Made by a program: the position numbers and the translations under genes. Under the pieces are notes generated by a model. That model did no database searches and was not told the DNA's origin. It saw only the letters and a program-made list of their open reading frames with translations. Shown piece by piece: positions 49,001 to 56,417 of a DNA stretch of 64,000 nucleotides; the first letter of the stretch is position 1; each line of letters opens with the position of its first letter. Source of the DNA: Blastocystis sp. Blastoise (lineage: Eukaryota > Protista > Bigyra: Opalinata); assembly GCA_039096225.1 (NCBI GenBank), contig JBBPEB010000013.1:806001-870000 (forward strand), given 5' to 3'.

Positions 49001-52000
49001 TTGTTCAACATTCAATAAGATATGAGCATGAGGTAATCCTCTCTTTTGAAATTCAACAGTATAAGTAATAGCTTGTGCTTTACCAAATACATTCTCATCT
49101 TTTAATAAATGATATAAATATTTCAATTTAATTGCAAATACTCTACAAACCAAATCAGGTCTTTCCCATGCTTCTTGATTAGGATATAAATTTTCTACTA
49201 TTTCTTTCCATTTTGGATTACATGTAAAAGTAATAAAATAATCTGGTTTACCATAATATCTTACTATTGTCATTGCATCTAAATAAGCTCCTTTCATATA
49301 TCTTGGTCCTCCTACAAAACCACTATTTAATATAATAGGTTTTCCTATTCCATTTGTTACTTCTTCATCTATTACTTGTTCTCTTCTTCTTTGATTATAT
49401 TGTCGTAACACATTATAAGATTCTGCTCTTAATTTTGATTGATTCATTTCTATAAATGATAATCGTTGTTCTTCTATTTTAGAATAAGCATCTACAATAT
49501 ATTGTAAGAATAATTTTCCTCCTGATAAGAAATAATTCTTATTAGGAAATGATCTTGGAAAACAAAGAAAAGAATAAAAATCCTTTAAAGTAAAAGATGA
49601 TTTCTCATATACAGGATTTCCTATTAAATCTATAGGATATCCTTCATTATTAAATTGTTGATAATTAGCTAATAAAGTAATTGATTTTGAAAAATCATCA
49701 TGAGTTTGTCTTGAAGACTCTCTATCCTCATTATCTATTTCATCTTCTTCATTATCTAATAATTGATTTCTATTATTATATCTACTATTTCTATTTGATT
49801 CTCTTTCTATTTGTTCTACTTGAATGTTAGTATTTTCTATTGTATTTGAATTGATTTGAGAATGTATTTCTATATTATTATTTCTTCTTGGAATATAATT
49901 AGGATTTCTTCTTAATTCACTTTTAGATGCAAGAATAAATAATGGAATTCCTGTGGGATAAAATATAGGATAAACCATAGGATCACAAAATGGATTATCA
50001 TATTTCATTCTTGTAAAATGTTGTCTTATTTCTTCATTCATATTCATATGATTTGTATTATTATTAAGATGAATTCTTGGATAACATCTAAATTCAGTAT
50101 GAGGAAATGTTTCCATAGAATTAATAGGAACAATAAGTGCTATTTCATGAGAAGCAGAAGGAGTATTATATCTTCTTTGATCATCTGAATGTAATGTTTT
50201 GAATTTTAATGAAACATCTACTTGTGATATATGAAGATTATTATTATTAGTTGTAGCAGTAGTTACTTCTTCATGTAATGTCTTAAAAGCATTCATTAAT
50301 TCATTATTTAATAATGAATTATGTAATACTCTCATTATTTCTGTATTCAAATTATCATAATATTGATTATTTGATCGAAGTTGAAAAGCTTCTTCTTGAT
50401 CATAAATATATATTTGATTATAATTAGGAGTAATACCTTCAGGAGGATATAAATCTGCCATAGAATGATATATATTTCCATGTACTTTATAGAAATATAT
50501 TCCATTATTATCTAATCTTGTTTGTGTATCAGTACATGACATAGAAGCAAAGGCTATTGAATTATTATATCTACGAATATCTTTCTTAAATTGTTTTGAA
50601 GAATCTGTATTATCATTCAATAAGTTTTGAATTGATATATCTGGTTCTGATAATGAACCTAAACGTACTTTTCCATTACGACAACAACCACTATATTGAC
50701 TATTCTTTAATATAATATTTCCTTCTGTGTCAAGTGTCCATTGTCTTCTTCTTTTTGTATATATTATTGTATTATTTATTGTATCATTATATGAATTTGA
50801 TGGTTCTTCAAAAAATGTTGTATCATAATTAGTTGAAAACTTAAAGTTGTTTCTTTCATGTTCAAAATGTAAAGCATTACAACATGAACATTTAAATATC
50901 ATTTTACCCAAGTCATAATATTCATATTTATTTTCTTCTTCATCAATTATTTGATATGAGTTTCCTATATATAAAAGAATTGTTTAATATTTTTCAAGAT
51001 TCATATTTAAAAACAATATATTACTATTATTCATACTTATTGGAGAAAAAGCCAAAATATCTCTTCTTGTAAAAATTAAATTATTTAATTCATCGTTATT
51101 GTCTAGAAGTATATCTATATATTATTATTTATAATTCATAATTATATCAAACATATAATATATATTTATATTAAAAAAAACTGTTATAAAAACAAAAAAA
51201 TATAATTAAAGTTGTAATTACTTGATAGATTTTGATTATTCTCATCATTAGTTAATTGATCACTAATATCATGATTATTTATTATGTAATCATCGTTTTG
51301 TTCACTCTGTAAATTTATGCTGTTAGCAACATTTTCTTCGTTTATATTATTATTATCCAATTCTATTAAGTTATTTACACTATTAGGTACTATTATTATC
51401 CCATTTTCAACGTCATTTATTTCTATCATATTTTCATCATTAATAGTTACTTCAGAATGATCATTAATATTAGATGTTGTTATGTCATTTAAGTTCCTAG
51501 AAATACTATTATTCATATCAATAATATCCATGTTATTATATAAAGCAAGTGTTTCGTCATTGGTTATTGATTCAGATGATGATTTTTCACTATTTTCAAT
51601 TATACTACTGTTTGTGATATTTATATCTTCCAAATGTACTGTCAAATTTAAGTCATTGGAATCAATAATGTTGTTATAAGTTGGAAAAGTATTATTTTGT
51701 GAGTTGTTACTATTAATAGTTTCTTTATCCTGATTTAAATCTTCAACATTTTTTTCATCATGAAAGTCATCATCAATTAAATCGTGTATACCATTATTAA
51801 TTTGGAACTCAAAGTTATCAGTAACATTTTTGTTAAATTCAGTGTCATCATTGTTTTCGATTACCGATTGATAATCAGAACAAATACATTCATTGTCATC
51901 TGTTTTATTGAGATTAGATACTATAAAATATTTTTTATCATTTCTATTATTATTATATTCATTTGAATCTCTATTAGTTAAGCTAGGTTCATAATGTGTT

Positions 52001-55000: not shown

Positions 55001-56417
55001 CCGAAATCTTTTTACTTACAGAATTATTTTTATTACCTAAATAATAATAAGAGTAGCGAGATTTGAAATTATACTTATATTATAATAGCGGATAATTAAT
55101 GAAATAGTAAGAATTTCTAAAAGAAAGTAATCACAGTAAATTATATATACATTCTCGCACAGGTGAAAGATCAGGAAGTGATATAGGTTTATAATGTTTC
55201 ACTATATATAAACATATAAATATATATAAATATATATATGATACTTTTTGATAATGGTAATGGAAGAATAAGTGACGATTCATCAATAGATTCTTTTGAA
55301 GAAGATAATAATTTATTTTGGTCTGCTTTTTTTTCTAAATATATATATATATATACAGTATTCATTTAATATAATATTTAAAAAATTATGATTATATTAT
55401 TATTATATATAGTTTAGATATATTTATGATTAATAATGGTAAATACTTTCTATTCCCACATTTTCTACTTTATTTGTTGCTATAATAAATATATATATAT
55501 ATATATATATATATATATATATATATATATATATATATATATATATATATATATATATATATATATATATATATATATATATATATATATATATATATAT
55601 ATATATATATATATATATATTACCATCTTTATTTGTAGCCATTAAATCATCTGTTGTCTTACTTATTTGTTCTAAATAATAAGTATAAGAATAGTAATTA
55701 TATATATAAAGTAATAACAAAGATAATAATAAAATAAAATATTGAAAATATATATATATAAAAAAATAAAATAAAAATAATATATAAAACATTGTTATTA
55801 TATTTATATGAATAATAATGTTAATTATAATTGACAATAATGAATGCAATATTAATAATTATTATGATATATATATACTCTCTATAGCATGACTGTTTTC
55901 TTGAGTTGACGATTGACTTATAGATAGAATCATTGAATCCATTACTATATAATATAAAAAATAAAAATATTTAAAACATTCGTGTTGTTAAAAAAATTAT
56001 AATAAAGAAATAAAATATATATACCTGATGCAATTGTTGCAATATTGCTATTGTTACGTTTAGCTTCACTCCCAGTTGGACTTTGAGCTGCATTGTCTTG
56101 AGACTCTAAATCTTCTGACTTCTTATTGTCCCTCTGTTTATCAATATTAACTGATTCTGCTGATTCTAAAGATACATTATATATGTAGATAATGGATTAT
56201 TAAAAACATACCTTCAGTTGTTGTTGAAACCTGAGATACATCTATTTCTTGCTGAGCTATATACATGTAAAGATAAAACATGAATATATTGATATATATA
56301 ATAAAATATGTGACAGAATGGTAAGATATATAAGAAAAACATACAGCTTTGAGATCTGCGTTGTTGCATATCTTCTTTGTGTTGCTTTTTCTTTGAATAC
56401 TCTTTGCCAAATGTCAT
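46094..56417 (-). CDS. Helitron RepHel transposase, predicted 2528 aa from 24 exons (last exon 50964-46094 carries Zn-finger, HUH Rep and Pif1 helicase)
   Basis: [17 protein letters not shown] and CCRNGKV; Rep motifs [30 protein letters not shown]; helicase motifs intact. 23 upstream exons splice in frame from ATG 56417. The core ORF is certain; the N-terminal extension is a manual gene model. Confidence 0.88.

Follow-up and report, generated by a model that had tools for sequence, protein, structure and literature searches.

A probable 13.65-kb autonomous Helitron of Blastocystis with a 23-exon transposase gene, introns of uniform phase and near-identical copies differing by exactly missing introns

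Helitron transposases are usually seen as a single long open reading frame (ORF) with a short, variable N-terminus. A 64,000-nt stretch of the genome of Blastocystis sp. Blastoise (assembly GCA_039096225.1, contig JBBPEB010000013.1, positions 806,001 to 870,000; hereafter, the window) contains a transposase of this kind, RepHel, on its minus strand, preceded by a long chain of short exons. Why should a mobile element carry such a chain, why do all its introns share one phase, and do the chain (hereafter, the arm) and RepHel form one gene? The organism is strain Rus-B, from a Russian tortoise, with a genome of 33.3 Mb and 23% GC according to the genome paper (PMC10690189); the window itself is strongly AT-rich, with approximately 15–30% GC. 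Our analysis indicates that window positions 45857–59506 on the minus strand are probably occupied by a single copy of an autonomous Helitron, 13.65 kb long and recently active in Blastocystis sp. Rus-B, whose transposase gene has 23 exons.

An earlier sequence-only reading of the window had proposed a model of 24 exons, which we recomputed. All donors read GTA and all acceptors TAG, exon 1 measures 73 nt, the 22 internal exons are all multiples of three, and all introns are in phase 1; the joined frame of 2528 codons holds a single stop, at its end. A deposited protein, P0001 (2508 aa), is 100% identical over the catalytic ORF. Threading of P0001 on the window yielded 23 exons and 22 introns, again all in phase 1, and 21 of these 22 introns agree with the earlier model, including one that differs in its acceptor only. 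The acceptor in question, that of exon 15, lies at 53811 in the deposited model and at 53793 in the earlier one, 18 nt apart and both in frame. Downstream, the deposited model splices exon 22 (donor after 51222) straight to 50964 and skips the 78-nt exon 23 (51114–51037). A sister subfamily has a 36-nt micro-exon at this same position, and exon 23 may be at best an optional exon. The stop-free GT-AG chain with its uniform phase is thus upheld by the recomputed borders, by the threading and by seven intron-less junctions described below, while the start of exon 15 and the use of exon 23 had to be corrected. The remark that an ORF track misses the arm holds for a plain ORF list, but the public annotation already has the arm. 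The deposited genes were called with Braker3, Stringtie and Mikado, tuned to introns with at least 3 RNA-seq reads, as described in PMC10690189.

The 22 upstream exons of the deposited model range from 33 to 891 nt, with a median of approximately 66 nt. Of 21 internal exons, 18 have no stop-free frame other than the one used, and GC content is 26.4% in the arm exons versus 11.8% in the introns. Eight copies of exon 22 occur in the genome, with 93–100% identity, and none has a stop. To the arm and the rest of the window we applied a heuristic intron caller that is blind to the gene model. This called 13 introns in the arm, 13/13 in phase 1, while the rest of the window gave 41, 15 and 17 candidates in phases 0, 1 and 2, respectively. 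The earlier statement that other genes of the window use mixed phases is therefore plausible, and the uniform phase of the arm does not reflect a genome-wide bias. If introns are assumed to be independent, the probability of 22/22 in phase 1 is approximately 3e-12 at a phase-1 frequency of 0.3 and 1e-5 at 0.6.

The splice junctions could also be compared with other copies of the element in the same genome. Seven short introns (40–73 nt) are present in some copies and missing to the base in others (Table 1), intron 3a being the one that is absent from the window copy. As intron-free DNA versions of these seven exist in sister copies, the arm introns are evidently removed from real transcripts. 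Only 5 substitutions in 13.5 kb separate five of the copies, namely C14, C15a, C16up (located just upstream of the window), C16b and C16c, and this burst holds 0, 1, 1, 2 and 6 intron losses among its members. Losses track intron length: all seven lost introns measure ≤73 nt, corresponding to 7 of 10 short introns versus none of 13 long ones (Fisher p = 5e-4). Comparison of four sister-lineage copies, and of three copies of subfamily C, revealed no indels of intron size.

The pattern favours loss over gain for the polymorphic introns, because a diverged subfamily keeps 72-, 75- and 117-nt exons matching exons 18–20 and because each polymorphic intron has an identical sequence in at least two lineages. 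Intron gain was rejected, since introns 17–20 have positional equivalents in the diverged subfamily. An introner origin was likewise set aside; with up to 3 mismatches allowed, the sequences of introns 3a and 9 are confined to copies of this Helitron. Introns 3a and 7 are found in all four possible combinations of presence and absence, so recurrent loss or conversion between copies is needed. In C16up, intron 19 (264 nt), retained between the lost introns 18 and 20, carries two single-nucleotide polymorphisms typical of other lineages, which may mark a tract converted by partly spliced cDNA derived from another copy. The genome contains at least 20 reverse-transcriptase matches without stops. 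Loss might proceed through cDNA made by the retroelements of the genome and recombined into Helitron copies, or through RNA-templated repair coupled to rolling-circle transposition. A tentative extension, to which we give limited credence, is that the rate of deletion per intron exceeds the rate of point substitution per site by a factor of hundreds, deletion being driven by the Helitron's own partly spliced transcripts; if true, the family would record successive stages of RNA-mediated intron loss as a natural time series. When near-identical repeats are polished with short reads, an intron state could be assigned to the wrong copy, but the intron-less DNA must still exist.

Length variation of another kind was seen in introns 5, 12 and 16 (55623–55480, 54370–54269 and 53657–53550), which measure 144 versus 67–82, 102 versus 66–89 and 108 versus 65–90 nt across copies, respectively. 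The cause lies in (TA)n tracts, which begin directly at the GTATAT donor or lead into the ATATAG acceptor; the splice signals of these introns thus merge into the microsatellite.

Table 1. Features of the Helitron copy in the window. Unless stated otherwise, exons are based on recomputed borders and on the threading of P0001.
Feature	Position in window	Strand	Remarks
Complete autonomous Helitron copy, 13.65 kb	45857..59506	-	flanks of 6 full copies part exactly at these ends
Helitron 5' terminus	59506 end	-	reads TTAATATCC...
Helitron 3' terminus	45857 end	-	reads ...GAAACGCTTG, with ...CGCTTG
Non-coding 5' module, 2.2 kb	57306..59506	-	genome search with upstream DNA
Exon 1, 73 nt, ATG start, phase-1 end	56345..56417	-	
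Exon 2, 45 nt	56212..56256	-	
Exon 3, 141 nt	56025..56165	-	
Intron 3a, 40 nt, phase 1	after 69th base of exon 3 (56097)	-	in C16b, C16c, C20; not in window copy
Exon 4, 66 nt	55879..55944	-	
Exon 5, 48 nt	55624..55671	-	
Exon 6, 33 nt	55447..55479	-	
Exon 7, 90 nt	55245..55334	-	
Intron 7, 43 nt	55202..55244	-	exactly missing in C15a, C16up, C16c, C20
Exon 8, 51 nt	55151..55201	-	
Exon 9, 63 nt	54974..55036	-	
Intron 9, 40 nt	54934..54973	-	exactly missing in C16up, C20
Exon 10, 66 nt	54868..54933	-	
Intron 10, 45 nt	54823..54867	-	exactly missing in C20
Exon 11, 66 nt	54757..54822	-	
Exon 12, 63 nt	54371..54433	-	
Exon 13, 57 nt	54212..54268	-	
Exon 14, 111 nt	53853..53963	-	
Exon 15, 39 nt in deposited model (21 nt from acceptor 53793)	53773..53811	-	
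Exon 16, 63 nt	53658..53720	-	
Exon 17, 342 nt, lysine-rich nuclear-localisation-like patch	53208..53549	-	
Intron 17, 43 nt	53165..53207	-	exactly missing in C16up
Exon 18, 72 nt, core of the arm's only conserved block	53093..53164	-	
Intron 18, 65 nt	53028..53092	-	exactly missing in C16up
Exon 19, 75 nt, within conserved block	52953..53027	-	
Exon 20, 117 nt, within conserved block	52572..52688	-	
Intron 20, 73 nt	52499..52571	-	exactly missing in C16up
Exon 21, 84 nt	52415..52498	-	
Exon 22, 891 nt, N/D/I-rich	51222..52112	-	
Exon 23 of earlier model, 78 nt, symmetric, stop-free	51037..51114	-	unused in deposited model
Catalytic exon, 4.87 kb	46094..50964	-	zinc-finger-like C..C motif, Rep (HUH), PIF1 helicase, stop codon
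3' subterminal hairpin, 7-bp GC stem GGCCTGC/GCAGGCC	45869..45886	-	11 nt before element end, kept in 9 termini

The limits of the element were obtained from its copies. A genome search with the DNA upstream of exon 1 placed the beginning of similarity at approximately 59507, and alignments of 16-kb stretches around the exon-22 copies stop at 45850–45857. Both ends are common to 6 full copies with unrelated flanks, and the arm lies inside the mobile unit, occurring together with the 5' and 3' ends in at least six full copies. A 1605-aa ORF at 46094–50911 (minus strand) holds the Pfam domains Helitron_like_N, PIF1 and Pif1 2B. The Rep domain (PF14214, E = 1.4e-55) is covered over the full profile, and HAH and Y..KY motifs, expected of a two-tyrosine HUH protein, are visible in P0001. 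C-terminal to Rep is a PIF1-like SF1B helicase (PF05970 at 1e-59; PF21530 at 1.4e-18), and P0001 has the Walker A motif GPGGTGKT.

The termini start with T(T)AATATCC and end with CGCTTG(T), departing from the canonical 5'-TC...CTRR-3', and a Helitron2-type terminal inverted repeat of at least 10 nt, sought in the element ends, was not found. Against a genome background of approximately 77% A+T, the 5' flanking base is A at 9 of 10 ends, or T at 10 of 10 if the first T is assigned to the host, and the 3' flanking base is T at 9 of 9 ends. In the 3' hairpin, the loop (45876–45879) reads GTAT in the window copy versus GTAG in the other copies examined. At least 17 other elements begin at the same position with a version of the 5' module (57306–59506) that is approximately 88% identical, and diverge downstream of it; the module thus looks common to several Helitron families. 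It contained no ORF of at least 80 aa and no tRNA, and ARAGORN detected no tRNA-like gene across the element.

The window corresponds to 806–870 kb of contig 16 of the assembly, where four 13.6-kb Helitron copies, each with different flanks, lie within 122 kb (approximately 794.5–916.4 kb). This clustering suggests local hopping. A 530-aa ORF at window positions 29–1621 is the 3' part of one of these four copies. On contig 20 (approximately 20.8–53.5 kb), other Helitrons have inserted in nested fashion into a copy and split it near the equivalent of window position 55862, and the 3' end of one element directly abuts the truncated copy. The arm segment of this copy matching 54101–53558 shows dense differences in common with another subfamily, so that the arms are recombinant mosaics.

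Does the arm join RepHel in a single product? Acceptor 50964 is conserved in three lineages, including a second subfamily and a family with only 44% RepHel identity, and upstream of it sequence similarity between lineages collapses. The first in-frame ATG of the catalytic exon encodes the M of a conserved ...YY.LGKM..C..C.AL.F.E motif, and conservation at the protein level extends approximately 20 residues further upstream, to the shared acceptor. Since this M is internal in Helitron proteins of other organisms and coding conservation reaches beyond the ATG, the catalytic exon is not like a stand-alone ORF. A fusion of arm and RepHel is indirectly supported by these features and by the deposited model, which joins the two and was produced by a pipeline tuned to RNA-seq-supported introns (PMC10690189). 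In a sister lineage, the arm and RepHel were considered as one continuous ORF; this was dropped, as the ORF listing and translation place an in-frame TAA inside a 72-nt intron.

Some observations weigh against a single, constrained, fused gene built by exon duplication. Evidence for junction 51222>50964 comes from the deposited model and from conservation, and translation that continues past the exon-22 donor would stop after 12 codons (51184), which makes a separate arm protein possible. The pN/pS of the arm, approximately 0.6 from 62 changes, is not clearly below 1, the AlphaFold prediction for the arm's conserved block is poor (pLDDT 46.7), and similarity from exon to exon within the window copy's arm is weak, with 5 of 171 pairs at z>3. 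The stop at 51184 is also the starting point for an account with two genes, in which an accessory protein of the Helitron, encoded separately by the 22 exons, ends there and RepHel has its own transcript from the ATG near 50902. The deposited model of another copy (P0002, 1677 aa) begins only approximately 70 aa upstream of the catalytic exon, and the genome paper warns that assemblers can fuse neighbouring transcripts (PMC10690189). Nevertheless, we consider this account unlikely: both the acceptor and the protein sequence upstream of the ATG are conserved at 44% RepHel identity, the M is an internal motif residue in Helitron proteins elsewhere, and the last arm donor and the catalytic acceptor are both in phase 1 in three lineages. 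The suspicion that the chain is an artefact of picking frame-keeping GT-AG pairs in AT-rich DNA has a basis in the preference of ab initio gene finders, and of the earlier reader, for frame-preserving junctions. It is already refuted and retains practically no probability, given that intron-less DNA copies match seven of the junction pairs to the base, that exon and intron GC differ two-fold, that the frame used is the sole open one in most exons, and that the blind caller found one phase in the arm and mixed phases elsewhere.

The origin and use of the arm were evaluated from its protein sequence. The arm, of approximately 885 aa, is rich in N, S, K and D (47.7% of residues versus 27.4% in the RepHel part) and largely of low complexity. 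Searches took P0001:1-427 and P0001:447-885, and window positions 53296–53332 were masked in divergence counts. Between subfamilies with 94% identical RepHel, only a 143-aa block (P0001 441–579, exons 17–21) is alignable, at 38% identity and E = 1e-17, and it is preceded by the lysine-rich, nuclear-localisation-like patch. Between lineages, pN/pS is 0.16–0.19 for RepHel versus 0.58–0.66 for the arm, so the arm is weakly constrained at most and evolves much faster than RepHel. The sequence-only reading had offered a captured host gene fused to RepHel as one origin. Helitrons do capture genes, and the arm, with its own ATG exon and many introns, resembles a cellular gene. However, the conserved block matched only Helitron copies in the 33-Mb genome, and among 1.84 billion representative proteins the only credible matches were the Helitron models of the same genome; no Pfam domain was detected in any Helitron arm, and arms of the same design occur in three divergent Helitron lineages. 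We therefore regard capture as very improbable. One outside match, P0017, was rejected as a summed repeat artefact, consisting of 12 weak repeats against a prokaryote-type repeat protein. A further suggestion, that the cassette is a regulatory device in which exons are alternatively included or skipped to yield RepHel isoforms or to gate the transposase, as in P-element intron retention, strikes us as conceivable but doubtful. All exons are frame-neutral, exon 15 has its two in-frame acceptors, intron 22 contains an unused symmetric 78-nt exon, and some 27-nt units of a sister lineage that lack AG/GT borders are now intronic; but frame-neutral exons would be expected just as much if splicing errors and unit duplication were simply tolerated.

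The reading that we prefer, one transposase gene with a frame-neutral arm, gains a possible explanation from related elements. In P0003 (subfamily B), the first 1000 aa are interrupted by 22 introns, 21 of which are in phase 1; P0005, which comes from the family at 44% RepHel identity, shows phase 1 in 26 of its 27 introns. A run of 19 consecutive 27-nt exons in P0005 encodes one DSGSKLLTQ-type nonapeptide each; they are spaced by (TA)n-rich introns of 36–183 nt, and higher-order repeats are seen. The number of 27-nt units is 21, at least 17, 24 and 19 in four copies of this lineage, in which a few units have lost their place between AG and GT borders and now lie inside introns. The P0005-lineage cassette clearly expands and contracts through duplication of exon-intron units, which keeps one phase fixed. 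For the window copy, we infer a tandem-duplication origin of the arm from this sister lineage. The uniform phase could then be the effect of a filter: upstream of an essential transposase, only units of 3n length and a single phase would be tolerated during growth, shrinkage or mis-splicing, and such units would arise by tandem duplication of modules consisting of an exon plus a (TA)n intron. A search for contigs encoding P0001, P0003 or P0005 returned none.

The surroundings of the element hold other features. A repeat at 60952–64000 adjoins its 5' side and has at least 20 genomic copies, 98–99% identical, some with an internal break of 1-bp offset at query position 2322/2324; it carries a 315-aa ORF at 61812–62759 (plus strand) with no Pfam match. 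Host genes at 6613–12114 (minus strand) encode a Sof1/WD40 protein (DCAF13-like, approximately 6.6–8.9 kb) and an AMP-binding enzyme (approximately 9.2–12.1 kb); both genes have multiple exons, and most of the candidate introns that the heuristic caller placed in them are in phase 0. ORFs at 21750–24301 (minus strand) contain RNR_Alpha and the insertion domain of a B12-dependent (class II) ribonucleotide reductase, which is unusual for a eukaryote and may reflect a bacterial transfer.

The gene model itself is already public, and the rapid, precise intron loss is an unexpected additional finding. Our search of the genome paper (PMC10690189) found no mention of the uniform phase, the micro-exon arrays or the intron-loss series. 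Taken together, one protist genome harbours three Helitron lineages with arms of 600–900 aa and up to 27 frame-neutral exons, including true 27-nt micro-exons. It would illustrate, in a clean natural case, how an essential reading frame forces the part upstream of it into one intron phase, and how micro-exon arrays arise from repeats of an exon plus a microsatellite intron. Near-identical copies that differ by exact intron deletions would allow the mechanism and the size-dependence of loss to be studied almost in real time in a culturable organism, a question mostly approached so far by comparing distant species. If the arm holds a nuclear import signal or a block for docking host factors, it would also bear on the control of Helitrons.

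Compared with the RepHel transposases of known Helitrons (bat Helraiser, plant and fungal), the element shares the order Helitron_like_N (HUH Rep), PIF1-type helicase and Pif1 2B, as well as the N-terminal C..C zinc-finger-like motif, the 3' subterminal GC hairpin and the presence of multiple near-identical insertions, and it may also lack target-site duplications. In contrast, approximately 885 aa precede the zinc-finger-like motif here versus 0 to approximately 345 aa in the other Helitron proteins retrieved, the arm is built from 22 frame-symmetric phase-1 exons, and the termini of the Blastocystis element are not canonical. Precise intron loss from the transposase gene of a DNA transposon is known between old CACTA families, where it was attributed to reverse-transcribed mRNA (Buchmann et al. 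2014, PMC4158355). The CACTA losses divide ancient families, whereas the seven in the Blastocystis Helitron separate copies 5 substitutions apart in 13.5 kb and affect only introns of ≤73 nt; in the literature we found no report of transposase intron loss among near-identical copies. Genes with one repeat per exon (LRR, ARM and collagen-type) likewise combine a uniform phase with symmetric exons from tandem exon-intron duplication, but they encode folded repeat domains, while the Helitron arm is of low complexity and its exons are no longer alike.

Schistosome micro-exon genes (MEGs) are cellular genes for small secreted proteins with a signal peptide. The Helitron cassette is instead the N-terminus of a 2500-aa transposase in a mobile element; on inspection its exon 1 peptide is charged and has no hydrophobic run, and the product continues into the 1600-aa transposase. 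Most exons of the window copy measure 45–117 nt rather than ≤36 nt, a size reached by exon 6 only (33 nt), or by two exons if the 21-nt form of exon 15 is counted. The comparison with MEGs made in the sequence-only reading is nonetheless fair with regard to design: both have tandem short exons in multiples of three that can be gained, lost or skipped without a frameshift, and the sister Helitron lineage reaches the short-exon size range of MEGs as well, with 19–24 exons of 27 nt whose number varies while the frame is kept.

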